From Paragordius varius (taxonomy: Eukaryota; Animalia; Nematomorpha): 64,000 bases of DNA. The notes beneath the pieces are model-generated. The model was given only the letters and a program-made list of their open reading frames with translations, did no database searches and was not told the DNA's origin. Shown one piece after another: positions 5,014-11,214 of this stretch (position 1 is its first letter; every line of letters starts with the position of its first letter). The stretch spans positions 1,984,001-2,048,000 of the forward strand of contig OZ176052.1 of NCBI GenBank assembly GCA_964247055.1, given 5' to 3'. Both the position numbers and the translations under genes were made by a program.

Positions 5014-6015
5014 TAAAAATAAATATTTATTGAAATATTAATATGCGACCTCTCTTGTAATTTATCCATTACTATATGGAAAAATCATGGAAATGTTTTT
5101 AGCATTAACTACGTGACAATAATACGTAGAGAGGATAGAAAAAAATATTGTTTATCTACCCACATTCTACCATATATATATAAGAATAATTTTTTTATTA
5201 CAGTTATTCCCGTGAAAATCAACGATTGTTTTCTACCTAGACCTCTTTTAACTCCTTAAAGCTACTTCAATACTTTAATTTTGAACTATGCAGCATGGCA
5301 TCGACTTTATTCGGATAATTGTTAATTGCTATTAAATTGAATAACAAAAGTGGGAAAATGGTTCTACTTATTAATAGTAAAAATATAAATTTCCGAGTCA
5401 AATATTGTTAGACAAACCTTAGCTGCTTATCTTATTAACTTATCGAGAGAAACAACCTATAGAAAATCTAATCAGAAGAATATCGGTTTGAAATATATAT
5501 TTAATAGATATGGCAAACAAACACTTTTTTGGATTTATTAATCAAATTGTTGTTTTTTATGGATAAAAAGTTAAGTTTTTTTGCAACAATGGAATTCGGG
5601 ATTTTCTGTCAAATTGAAACCAAATTTTAATTTCTTTAAATAAAATATACGCTTTAGGTGAGTTTACTTAGCGCTTTTGTGGCATTTTTCTAAACATTGG
5701 CAAATTAAGGGTCTAATGGATGTGTGCATTTTATGTTAATTAAGTATTAATAATTCAAATTTATATGCGAAATCAATAAAATTAAATATATAATATATTG
5801 AATATTAGATGAAATTATATTCGTTACTTTTTATTATCCTTAGGCAAGGTTCAATTTAACCAATATACATAAATTATTCATTATGTTATAATATCTTATA
5901 TTCCCAACCGCATCATCACAGGTGCAAAAAATTAATAATGTGCTTTATCATTATTTTTTGCGTTAGTTAAATTATATATTTTTTTATTTTATTTTCTTTT
6001 TTTGTCGTAATAACT

Positions 6016-6963
6016 ATGTCAACTAAAGATATATACGGTTACACGGTAAAGGACATTTATGGGAAAACGGTTTGTATGGAAAAATACAGGTACAATATTT
6101 TTTGATAACGAAAAAATATTTTAAAAATATTACATATAACATTATTATGTATTGTAAAATAGGGGTAGAGTATTGCTTATTGCAAATGTTGCGTGTTTCT
6201 GAAAGTTCACTGATCAAAATTATCGTGAACTTGAAGCTCTTTATCTCAAATATAGGGATCAAGGCTTATCTATCCTAGCTTTTCCTTGTAATCAGTTTGG
6301 ACAACAGGTAAAACCTTATTTTTTTCTTAATTCCAAAAAAATATATATTATTATAAGTTTTGCATTCGAAATAGGAACCGGGCACTAATCAAGAAATTCT
6401 AAAGTTTATTGCAAAGTATAATGTCGATTTTGATATGTTTGACAAAATTGAGGTCAATGGTGATAATAGTTGCCCGCTTTTCAAATTCCTTAAAACTGAT
6501 AAAAATGGGAAAGTTGAGTAAGTTATGCATTTATGATAACACTAAATCTTAATTATAAATATGGGTTACTTTTTTTAAAATTATAATTTATTTTATTAAT
6601 AATTTAAACATATAAAATATTTTTTATAGGGATATAACGTGGAATTTTGCCAAATTTTTGGTCAATCGAAAAGGACACGTCGTTAAGCGTTATTTGCCCA
6701 AAATTTGTCCATTCGTAAGTTTTTGATTGCCTTTCTTTTAATTTATGTTATATATTTTAATTTGGTCATTTTTTTTATTAAAGGTCAATAAATTTAGTTT
6801 TTTTTATTTTAAAATGTAATTTCAAATAAATATTTAAAAGTTAATGGAAAATTTAAGCACTTTCTATGTAAAGGTAGAGAACTATTAAATTCATATATAA
6901 TACTGTTGTTATATCTAGGATATCGAAAAGGATATTATTCCACTGCTTGAAGAAAGCCCATAA
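6016..6963 (+). CDS. GPX4: Glutathione peroxidase, GPx4/PHGPx-like selenoprotein (163 aa, Sec encoded by TGA 6200-6202)
   Basis: Exons 6016-6089, 6163-6307, 6375-6517, 6630-6714 and 6919-6963 are all GT-AG and total 492 nt. Translation: [45 protein letters not shown]...[14 protein letters not shown]...[14 protein letters not shown]...[14 protein letters not shown]. The GPx motifs FPCNQFG..E and WNF.KFLV are intact, and the TGA aligns with the catalytic U/C. Confidence 0.93.
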
Positions 6964-6994
6964 TTAATTGTTACGTTGAATTAATGTCCATATT

Positions 6995-7060
6995 GTACAT
7001 AATACTTAATGAAGAATTATTTGTAAATTTTGATAAATATTCTGGAACCCTTATTTGTAC
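6995..7060 (+). promoter_or_regulatory. SECIS element in the 3' UTR of the Sec-GPx
   Basis: ATGA (7009-7012), then 12 nt, AAA (7025-7027), then GGAA (7044-7047). Helix II pairs GAATTATTTGT with ATAAATATTCT. Helix I pairs GTACA(T)AATA with TATTTGTAC. It begins ~32 nt after the stop codon. Folded by eye only. Confidence 0.8.
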
Positions 7061-8450
7061 TTTATGTGCATTAATACAATTTTTTACAATATGTTAATTA
7101 TTATCCTAAAATAATTAAATTATTAGCACATCGAAAATTAATTGCGGAGAAATAAATATTTTTGAATCATTATTACATTTGATTAATTTCTAATATAGGT
7201 TTTTGTAAAAAATATTTCATGGTTTAATGCAAATTCGTCTCTATTTAGCACGATTTAGTACAAATTCGAGCCTTTACCTTACATTTGACATCTTTTTAAA
7301 ATATAACACTTTTGATAAAGTTACAAATTATATCTTGGTTTTTATCAATTAAAATATGGACTTTATTACCAGAATGTCGCAAATTTACATCTTACCCTTG
7401 TTTGCTGTTATTGTCAGGTTATCTCAAACCAATACATGATTTTATTGGCATATGGACAAAATATTTTCTTAGACCTAGTTTGCAAAATATATAAAAACGT
7501 GGCAAAATATTGATGAGGTTTAATATCGGATAGCTTGAAACAACAGGTATGTGTATACCCGCCAAACACATTTAGTGACAAAAATATTTTTGTGTTAAAG
7601 CGAATTACTTTTCCGTTTACCGCTACCTAACATTCATTAATTTGTAGATCATTAATGTCGGGGTTACTGTATCCCATACCTTTAATTAACACATCATTTT
7701 ACCTTTTTACTTTTTTGTCCTAGTTTTTATATTGAGGCGGCCCTGTTCTAGAGTCTATAACAACTCTAAAACACGATTTACCTTAACAGCCGATTTTAAA
7801 AACAAATATCTTTGCTGGCAAAATAAAATCTAAAAAGTCATTAAAGCTAATCATTTACATTTGCTAACCATAATAACCATAGCAATTTAAAAAAATTAAA
7901 AAAAGCGGCCAAAATGTTTGAGAAGAGGATTTTTTAACAATTTTACATTTTTTAAATGAAAATTTTTTATAATGCGCCTAAAAGGCTAAAAGAGCATATT
8001 TTTTAATTTGGCTTACTACCTTAAATACATTTAAGATATTCAAATTTTGAATCATTCTGAGATGTAAAACTACCTCAAAAGGTCATGAAGCGTTAAAATT
8101 AATTTAGCATTAATATTAACAGAATATATGGCTTCTTTTGCAGTATTTTTCTATTTAGTTAATGGAACATATCATATTGGTTAACTTTTATGTTTCTCCA
8201 TAAAATAAGTATTATCATTTTTTTGTACTTCCGGTTTTTCAATTTTTGTAAGTGCAAACTTACGCAATGGTTTTATATTTTTCCATATTTTTTTAAAAAA
8301 CGTGATTTTAAAAAGGCTTAGATCCAATTTTCAAAATATTGAAATAAATTTGTTGGATCCAAGTTTAAAAAAAATGGTAGAAAAAGTTTGAAATGGTGAT
8401 TTTGTACAATTTTACATCTTTTAAAACATATTTTTTATCATGCGTCTTAA

Positions 8451-8546
8451 AGGGTGTCCAACACGCAAACCGCAGGCCGCATGTGGCCCGCCGGATTATT
8501 TGAGTTGAACATGCGACAGATGCCGCAGTCTGTGTTGGACACCCCA
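8451..8546. mobile_element. Tiny hAT-like MITE remnant
   Basis: Inverted ends GGGTGTCCAACAC...GTGTTGGACACCC enclose a GC-rich 'ccgcaggccgcatgtggcccg' core. It resembles the element at 61921. Confidence 0.5.
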
Positions 8547-8643
8547 GGCCTGAAAGGTTAAAAGCATAATTAAAAATGTATAGCCTTGGGGTATACAACT
8601 ACCCTAGGTCATAGACTGTATATTTATAAATCTCAAGTTTGAT

Positions 8644-9233
8644 TTAACACTTGGATACAACACACTCATTTTAGTCCTTCGATTCAAATTGGGGTAGTTG
8701 GATACCCCAGGCCTGTTTAAAATCAAATACTTTAGAAAGTATGGAAGCAATCGAAACCATGGCAAAATTTTGCACTTATATAACATTAATAAACCGAAAT
8801 ATATAAAAAATTTTATTCAAAAATACTTGATCTTACTTATTTTGAGCTAAAACTGAAAGGTAAAAATTTAGTCAACGTGACATGTGTCAAATTGTAAAAT
8901 TAAAAAATAATACAAAATAAACCGCTTTTTCTATTTCTATCAATGTTAATTGTAATTTATATATAAAAAAAACTTTAGCTTTACCCTTAAAATTAAATGA
9001 AGACTATATTTTGCAAAATTTTTGTAAAATAAAAATGGCGTCGAAGTAGCTTGAGATGGAACTTTTTTTTCAAAACAAAATTTTATCAGGATATTTTGGC
9101 ATATTTATATAATATTTATCAGGATAGAAGCATAAATTCAAATTGAGACCGTTTCCTTCAGTAGTTTTTTAAAAATTTTATTTTAAATTTAGTCTGGGGT
9201 ATTTAGATACCCCAAATTGAATCGAAGTGTTAA
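8644..9233. mobile_element. MITE flanked by TTAA (piggyBac-like termini)
   Basis: TTAA-CACTT...AAGTG-TTAA, with subterminal inverted GGGGTA..GATACCCCAG blocks. Related copies lie at ~42100-43103. Confidence 0.55.
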
Positions 9234-9564
9234 CAAAATGCCATAAAAGGGGGCAAATTTGATTGCAGATTTAATATTTCTTCAAATAATGAGCCATTTA
9301 ATGTCTATTTTAAATTTATCAATATCATAATTTTGGATTAAATTTGTAAATGAAGAAAATTATCCAAAAATAAAGATAAATTAGCTTTTACAATCCGAAT
9401 TTTTTCCAAAGGTAAGAGCTTTTTAGCTATGTTTATCAATTCAATAAATAACTAGCGAAAATATACATCATGTGATATCTATATTGTTAAGCTTAAAATT
9501 TGCAACATTTTTATAATATTTATAATTTACAACCTTCAAACGCAAATAAATAAATCGTCACCTG

Positions 9565-10204
9565 ATGTACAAAGTCTTGCGAAATTTAAATACCCTACCG
9601 ACTGTGTTTTGTGCCATGTCTTCAGAAAGTATCTATAATTTTACGGTAAAAAATATTGACGGTGAAAATGTTTCATTAGAAAAATATAGGTTTTACTTAT
9701 ATACATAAAATTTAGAGGTAAAGTGTTATTAATAACTAATGTCGCTTCCAAATGTGGCTTTACTGATTCAAATTATAAACAATTCCAAGAATTATATGAT
9801 AAATATAAGGACCAAGGTTTTGAAATTTTAGCTTTTCCTTGTAATCAATTTGGTAGCCAGGTTTTATTAACAATTATATTTACAGGAATCCGGTGACGAA
9901 TGTCAGATAAAGAAATTTGCTACTAACTATAAAGTCACTTTTGACATGTTTTCAAAGATTGATGTCAATGGTGAAAAGGCTGATCCTCTATTTAAATTTT
10001 TGAAAACCAAATTAAGTGGTTTAGTTTTTGAGTAATCATATAATGTTATAAATTAGTGCAATAAAATGGAATTTTACAAAATTTTTGGTTGATAGAAATG
10101 GTATCCCCTATAAAAGATATGCCCCAAAGGATGAACCCAAAGTATAGAAAATTTTAATTTTTTAGACTATGGAAAAGGATATACAGGAACTTTTGAGCAA
10201 ATAA
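9565..10204 (+). CDS. GPX4: Glutathione peroxidase, Cys-containing GPx4/PHGPx-like paralog (179 aa from ATG 9565; second in-frame ATG at 9616)
   Basis: Exons 9565-9689, 9716-9860, 9886-10031, 10057-10141 and 10166-10204 total 540 nt. The GT-AG introns are 26, 25, 25 and 24 nt. Translation: ...[15 protein letters not shown]...[12 protein letters not shown]...[15 protein letters not shown]...[12 protein letters not shown]. Confidence 0.93.
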
Positions 10205-11214
10205 GTTTCAAAAAATAAAAATTATTAGTATTTATATATAGTTAAAATATATTACATTTCATGTTATAATTATTCAATAAGTATTATAAAACATAAAATT
10301 TTTCAAAATTCATGTACATGATTAAGCATATTAAATTTTTATATATTATTGATTGTTAGATATAAATATCATAAAAAATATATCTTAAATATTAAGTATA
10401 TGTAGCCTGTTTTGTGAATGTCCACCATTCATATAAATGCTTATGTAAAATTAGATTTGCCATATATATACATGTAAATATCAAATATCCAACATTAAAT
10501 AAGCTGTATTATTATATTTATTAAACCTTTTTTTTAATTATCTACAATATAAAATAAAATTGTTTTTTTTAAACGAAATTGTTGTTTTTGATGTCTAGAA
10601 GTGAAATAATTTGCCATTCTAAAGTGGACAATAAATACTAAAAACAATTATTAATAATTCTACATATAATAACATTTAATTAGAGGCGTAGCTTGCACTG
10701 GTCCGTAATGGCCCCACATCTTTCATAAAACCCTTTGCATTTTTTTAAAAAAATTGAAATTTAAACCGTGAGGGGGACGAAATGGGCCCATCTTTAACAG
10801 AAACACACGAAAAAAAGCATAATTGAACCCCCTTTCTTTGAACAAGACGGCTTGCTTAGTAACAAATGTATCAGTAATTGATAAATAATAATCTTAATTT
10901 CTGTGCGAAATGTTCAACTTAGTTAAATATAAATGTTGTGGAAAAGCAGTATTCAGACTGCATTCGAATGCATGGCCCAACTAAAAATTTTTTTTTGGAA
11001 AATGGATTGCGTCCGAAAAAGAGTGGCAATCCTTGATAAAAAAAAATTGGGCGCAAAAGTTTACTATAAATTTTCATGCTGCATCGTTAGTATATAGCAT
11101 ATTACATATATAATCCACATTTATTTATAAGGCAAACATATATACATTAATTTCTGCATTTCTTTCCCATAATATCAATTTAAAGAATTTAATATAGGTA
11201 GCATTAAAGAAGCA

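Follow-up and report, generated by a model that had tools for sequence, protein, structure and literature searches.

The window, i.e. the whole 64-kb stretch of DNA analysed here, carries two tandem genes of the glutathione peroxidase (GPx) family on its forward strand. The first (6016-6963) displays an in-frame TGA at its catalytic position and is called Sec-GPx here, after its predicted selenocysteine (Sec). The second (9616-10204) is a paralog with a cysteine codon at that position. The region is of eukaryotic character, with a G+C content of ~26 %, close to the 26.9 % of Gordionus montsenyensis, and genes interrupted by GT-AG introns. Sec-GPx was found to be composed of five exons, as read from the sequence and from the translation of each exon, and every one of its introns is bounded by GT and AG. 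The coding sequence measures 492 nt (163 codons and the stop).

Exon 1 of Sec-GPx (6016-6089, +) starts with the ATG at 6016-6018, ends in a phase-2 donor (two nucleotides left over) and corresponds collinearly to the first exon of the paralog. Exon 2 (6163-6307, +) harbors both the active-site loop NVACF-TGA-KFT, whose TGA at 6200-6202 (+) is the predicted Sec codon, and the FPCNQFGQQ motif. It is followed by exon 3 (6375-6517, +), by exon 4 (6630-6714, +), which includes the TWNF motif, and by exon 5 (6919-6963, +), whose translation ends in the TAA stop at 6961-6963. The four introns are 73, 67, 112 and 204 nt long. Downstream of the stop lies a SECIS-like hairpin (6980-7075, +). Some 75 nt past it, an AATAAA (7151-7156, +) was read from the sequence as a possible poly(A) signal; this is weak evidence, since the motif is frequent in AT-rich DNA.

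A preliminary description of this DNA had placed the TGA exactly where the neighboring paralog has its catalytic TGT, and had held the rest of the GPx frame to be intact. Both statements stood. The TGA of Sec-GPx and the TGT of the paralog (9753-9755) are each located 36 nt past the first full codon of exon 2. Counting from the TGA, residues 3-35 pair one to one with positions 49-81 of human GPX4 (chain 6hkq) in an ungapped alignment. The TGA thereby falls at residue 46, the Sec46 of that enzyme, as does the paralog cysteine. The exon model, the shared introns and the equal offset of TGA and TGT show that the coordinates and alignment of the preliminary description were correct. As to the frame, the ~125 codons distributed over four exons past the TGA were free of frameshifts and additional stops, and all their splice sites were intact; at this base composition, an estimated ~9 % of random codons would be stops.

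Homology searches were carried out with single exons or exon pieces rather than with a joined protein. Against the Pfam family GSHPx (PF00255), the post-TGA piece of exon 2 scored 46.3 bits (3.5e-12) and exon 3 scored 39.2 bits (5.5e-10), each separately exceeding the family cut-off of 27 bits. In a profile search of the genome, exon 2 read across the TGA reached 61.2 bits. In GPx enzymes, catalysis relies on a tetrad consisting of Sec or Cys, Gln, Trp and Asn. This tetrad appears complete in Sec-GPx, with the TGA at the Sec/Cys position, Gln in FPCNQFGQQ, and Trp and Asn in the TWNF motif of exon 4.

The active-site loop is unusual in two respects. The PROSITE-type GPx signature has Gly or Ala immediately past the Sec/Cys. 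Neither residue was found there in Sec-GPx, which displays Lys instead (U-K-F-T) of the usually conserved Gly, while the remaining positions of the signature fit. In addition, a Cys is present two residues ahead of the Sec codon (NVACF-U-KFT). The Lys is a deviation at a single signature position and would offer no ground for excluding the gene from the GPx family.

Within that family, exon 3 pointed to the GPX4 type. Its best natural PDB matches were mammalian GPX4 structures, including human ones (6hkq, 6hn3, 2obi, 5h5q), with E-values from 2.4e-13 to 8e-12; three de novo designed proteins based on GPX4 also appeared on top. GPX6 (7fc2), the only classical tetrameric-type GPx among the matches listed, gave 1.8e-3. 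The link between the FLK and WNF motifs is short (12 residues) and is devoid of the long oligomer-interface loop, as in the monomeric GPx4 type. These features of its predicted protein place Sec-GPx in the monomeric GPx4/PHGPx subfamily.

The tandem paralog (9616-10204, +; loop NVASKCGFT) displays four introns at positions and phases identical to those of Sec-GPx. These introns are 26, 25, 25 and 24 nt long (9690-9715, 9861-9885, 10032-10056 and 10142-10165, respectively). An in-frame ATG upstream, at 9565, would add 17 N-terminal residues, possibly a targeting peptide. Identity between the two copies amounts to 68 % for exon 2 past the TGA, 55 % for exon 3 and 62 % for exon 4; the duplication is therefore old. 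When compared with human GPX4 (6hkq), the Sec and Cys copies scored 47.6 versus 39.8 bits in exon 3 and 33.3 versus 33.7 bits in exon 2b. The Sec copy has thus not decayed, and it resembles human GPX4 no less than its Cys paralog does. Its intact downstream exons and preserved GPX4 scores exclude an old nonsense mutation; on the intactness of the gene alone, a very recent one would be compatible with the data.

A third GPx gene was located at contig C3:9572234-9575518 (minus strand). It displays very short introns, a longer N-terminal region and a Cys form of the active site (NVASKCGYT...AFPCNQFWEQ). This locus had been considered as a candidate Sec gene and was rejected: its reported internal TGA is intronic, and the catalytic codon encodes Cys.

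The SECIS-like hairpin begins on the sense strand 46 nt past the TAA stop of Sec-GPx. ATGA (7009-7012) is followed by 12 nt, by AAA (7025-7027) and, facing the ATGA, by GGAA (7044-7047). The fold comprises helix I, an internal loop holding ATGA, helix II, and an apical loop of 8 nt opened by AAA; as modelled, this arrangement has the layout of a type-1 SECIS. The minimum free energy (MFE) of 6980-7075 is -22.4 kcal/mol (z = -4.4), and none of 200 shuffled sequences folded equally well. Read in the canonical register, helix II is imperfect in its lower portion: the fourth pair of the quartet is A.G, and it is succeeded by G.U, an A/C mismatch, A-U, a U/U mismatch and then seven pairs. The MFE fold shifts by one base and thereby avoids these mismatches.

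The Rfam SECIS covariance models (release 15) remained silent on positions 5500-11000 and on the 500-nt slice 6950-7450 (E <= 10). They also missed the SECIS elements of two other selenoprotein genes of this genome described below, SPS2 and Sep15; the TrxR element lay outside that search. MAFFT did not align these AT-rich sequences in register, so that no covariance model of our own could be built and a scripted scanner combining motif search and constrained folding was used instead. The scanner demands ATGA, 10-13 nt, AA and GA; it tolerates no more than two non-pairs in a helix II kept in register, and requires a helix I duplex whose internal loops do not exceed 9 nt. It recovered all four elements (GPx, SPS2, Sep15 and TrxR). 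For the GPx element it counted nine of 11 helix II pairs in register and a helix I of -17.9 kcal/mol.

On both strands of the window (128 kb in total), the strict scanner returned the GPx element as its sole match. Two positions, 63244 and 50435 (+), were flagged by the loose scanner only; they fold into branched structures unlike a SECIS and are rejected under the strict settings. Across 100 dinucleotide-shuffled versions of the window, the mean number of matches per 128 kb was 0.37 at the loose threshold of -9 kcal/mol and fell to 0.05 at -12 kcal/mol, where the weakest real SECIS scores, and to 0.01 at -17.5 kcal/mol (approximately the level of the GPx element itself). The chance that such an element turns up in the first 300 nt past a stop, on the sense strand, is estimated at ~1e-4 to 1e-3. 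Weak strict matches in two other slices of the genome (L036 and L037) were unrelated sequences near the loose threshold. In the 1 kb past the tandem Cys paralog, and likewise past the third GPx gene, the scanner detected no SECIS-like element.

The preliminary description had announced a SECIS of the form AUGA-N12-AAA...GGAA with two helices past the stop. The motif proved exact, both helices were recovered, and the structure is rare in shuffled sequence. The same description had named failure of a SECIS covariance model as grounds for abandoning its reading. Formally, this failure occurred, but the silence of Rfam speaks neither for nor against the element in so AT-rich a genome, because the same models miss the SPS2 and Sep15 elements. 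The Rfam models are insensitive to the AT-rich SECIS elements of this genome, which constitutes a blind spot for automated screens.

The genome (110.6 Mb, 44 contigs) was searched for further genes of this kind, and three were found to display an in-frame TGA at a known Sec site together with a SECIS-like hairpin in 3' position. SPS2 (C4:8403868-8408570, at 8.405 Mb) reads LKG-TGA-GCKVPQ and has its SECIS in slice L016:2300-2400. Sep15 (at 1.062 Mb of C10; slice C10:1060602-1063832, ~1490-1900) reads VVCG-TGA-KLKAYPQ. Its SECIS is textbook-like, with ATGA at 1826, a perfect helix II of 10 bp and TGAA at 1863, and lies 55 nt past the stop. The last exon of TrxR (at 0.88 Mb of C4; slice C4:878454-881591, 2016-2381) ends in KKGGC-TGA-GGT-TAA, corresponding to the GCUG motif, and its SECIS (ATGA at 2311, GGAA at 2357) displays 11 of 11 helix II pairs. 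Globally, the three hairpins lie 55-226 nt past their stops and share AUGA-A/C, 12-13 nt, AAA(A) and an opposing K-GA-A. They have 9 to 11 clean helix II pairs, unlike the GPx element. Genome searches with the Pfam families Rdx (SelT/W/H) and SelK returned nothing; short exons weaken such searches, and absence is not implied.

The preliminary description had also supposed that the lineage retains its Sec recoding machinery, and most of the components that it named for a genome check were indeed encountered. A tRNA-Sec at C3:5179227-5179312 scored 76.8 bits against RF01852 (cut-off 47), and ARAGORN identified the same interval as tRNA-SeC with anticodon TCA. SepSecS (the SecS of that description) extends over six exons at C2:14282497-14286015. 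An exon of eEFSec matched human eEFSec (5izk) at 2.4e-16, versus 7e-9 for archaeal SelB and 6e-5 for EF-1A. The SPS2 described above is itself a Sec-containing form (LKG-U-GCKVPQ).

The two remaining components of that check gave a different outcome. Only a single locus of the KTI12 family was found in the genome (C3:10196539-10197256), and it could represent either KTI12 or PSTK, the two being indistinguishable here. A second match to TIGR03574 was considered as PSTK and discarded, being a NUBP-type ParA ATPase. Animals that use Sec normally carry both KTI12 and PSTK; with one locus found where two are normally present, one of them is absent or has diverged beyond the reach of these searches. 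SBP2 was not found in a genome search for L7Ae domains, which yielded only RPS12, RPL30, RPL7A, NHP2 and SNU13. Nematode SBP2 proteins are diverged and comprise as few as 152-228 residues (PMC4114682), which is why this result is not read as absence. RPL7A exons occur in three near-identical copies (C10:3062040-3065446, C10:3088544-3088663 and C11:1273596-1278471).

Taken as a whole, the locus very probably represents a functional selenoprotein gene, predicted to encode a monomeric glutathione peroxidase of GPx4 (phospholipid-hydroperoxide) type of 163 residues. Genes for Sec-containing GPx4-type enzymes form a textbook class. We infer that Sec-GPx is transcribed and spliced, that Sec is inserted at its TGA and that the product is enzymatically active. 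According to the proposed mechanism, the spliced mRNA would carry UGA at codon 38 and, ~420 nt downstream of it, the type-1 SECIS of its 3' UTR. Through a SECIS-binding protein, this element would recruit eEFSec loaded with Sec-tRNA(Sec), and the ribosome would insert selenocysteine at the UGA rather than terminating. Hydroperoxides would then be reduced by the selenol acting with the conserved Gln of FPCNQFGQQ and the Trp-Asn pair of TWNF.

The strongest competing explanation, which we nevertheless consider improbable, is that of a Cys-GPx inactivated so recently by a TGT- or TGC-to-TGA nonsense mutation that its downstream exons have had no time to decay, the hairpin being a chance structure of AT-rich DNA. 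A single base change would suffice, two Cys paralogs could cover the function, the loop is atypical with its Lys past the TGA, and the hairpin combines an imperfect helix II in the canonical register with silence from Rfam. However, a hairpin of the right geometry is expected at most 0.05 times per 128 kb of shuffled sequence and yet was found on the sense strand 46 nt past the stop. Its type is that of the SECIS elements in the three other Sec genes, whereas the Cys paralogs are devoid of one, and the gene displays no second defect.

An error of sequencing or assembly, the true codon being TGT or TGC in an ordinary Cys-GPx, is less probable still. The base at 6202 is taken as called in the assembly. 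Such an error would have had to strike the third base of the sole catalytic codon, in a gene with a SECIS-like 3' UTR; moreover, the assembly is highly contiguous and three other genes display TGA at Sec sites. Least credible of all is that the UGA is decoded through near-cognate Cys or Trp read-through, or terminates translation to leave a 37-residue peptide, with the hairpin serving another role such as mRNA stability: this could appeal to Sec insertion being something we infer and to SBP2 not having been found in the L7Ae search, but the genome retains tRNA-Sec, SepSecS, eEFSec and Sec-SPS2, the hallmark of an organism that uses Sec, and a product of 37 residues would be without a fold whereas the downstream exons are conserved.

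If Sec-GPx is accepted as a selenoprotein gene of GPx4 type, its nearest known counterpart is mammalian GPX4. Besides the short FLK-WNF link, both lack a resolving Cys in the FIAKYN block and pair the Sec codon with a SECIS in the 3' UTR. The active-site loop of GPX4 is NVASQ-U-GKT, in contrast to NVACF-U-KFT here, and the SECIS of Sec-GPx is distinguished by its extreme AT-richness and by having been missed by Rfam. Furthermore, no alternative first exon of mitochondrial or nuclear type was seen for Sec-GPx.

Sec-containing PHGPx/GPx4 genes with a SECIS of the ATGA_AA_GA class are classical in vertebrates and platyhelminths. The platyhelminth genes are of the invertebrate PHGPx type, encode ~169 residues and carry an in-frame TGA together with a SECIS of that class (PMC2679728). 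The Sec-GPx of Schistosoma mansoni (2v1m, 2wgr) matched both exon 2 and exon 3, with moderate similarity only. It belongs to another phylum and, unlike the gene described here, the platyhelminth form keeps the Gly past Sec. Within Ecdysozoa, the tick Boophilus microplus displayed the only Sec-PHGPx of a published survey (PMC2679728). It provides a precedent, likened here by its description, although it comes from an arthropod and not from a nematoid.

Nematodes are probably the nearest sequenced phylum. Their PHGPx-like genes belong to the same PHGPx-type family and, in contrast to Sec-GPx, use Cys and are devoid of a SECIS (PMC2679728, PMC4114682). Caenorhabditis retains one Sec codon in its entire genome, in trxr-1; its homologues of GPx, Sel15 and SPS are without Sec, SPS2 being a Cys form (PMC4114682). 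In the present genome, GPx, SPS2, Sep15 and TrxR all display TGA and a SECIS. In the literature library searched, no paper on nematomorph selenoproteins was found.

These observations allow a broader proposal, for and against which we see the balance as even. Nematomorpha would have kept a working machinery and a selenoproteome of several members, comprising at least a GPx4-type enzyme, SPS2, Sep15 and TrxR, each encoded with a TGA and followed by one common kind of AT-rich SECIS. The loss of all but one Sec codon, which left GPx, Sep15 and SPS2 as Cys forms, would then have taken place inside Nematoda after the split. The same proposal holds that Sec-GPx may have derived a C-x-U-K loop allowing an internal selenenylsulfide, and that SBP2 is perhaps too diverged or too short to be detected. 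If the genome is that of a nematomorph, it would serve as an outgroup for the reduction of Sec usage in nematodes: GPx, Sep15 and SPS2 have Sec here and Cys there (PMC4114682, PMC2679728), which would date the Sec-to-Cys replacements to the nematode stem or later.

Standard gene callers stop at TGA, and the GPx, SPS2, Sep15 and TrxR genes will probably be annotated as truncated or missing wherever no selenoprotein-aware tool is used. The preliminary description had expected automated annotation to truncate Sec-GPx, which is plausible. Screens for SECIS elements based on Rfam will not rescue such genes in AT-rich genomes like this one. The tandem Sec/Cys pair, with its identical intron positions, represents a clean natural case for the study of Sec/Cys exchange. 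The understanding of Sec recoding and of GPx catalysis is left unchanged by these results: the gene type is well known, and what is new is a member from a probable nematomorph.

The mitochondrial contig of the same assembly (C44:1-15693, 15.7 kb) is densely packed with perfect palindromes or inverted repeats; they number in the dozens, and their arms measure 31-208 nt. It also contained an array with a 72-nt period, built from a palindromic unit of 49-52 nt and extending from ~6750 to 7450, just upstream of COX1 (7480-8820). Perfect inverted repeats of this kind are reported as a peculiarity of nematomorph mitochondrial genomes (PMC6649704).
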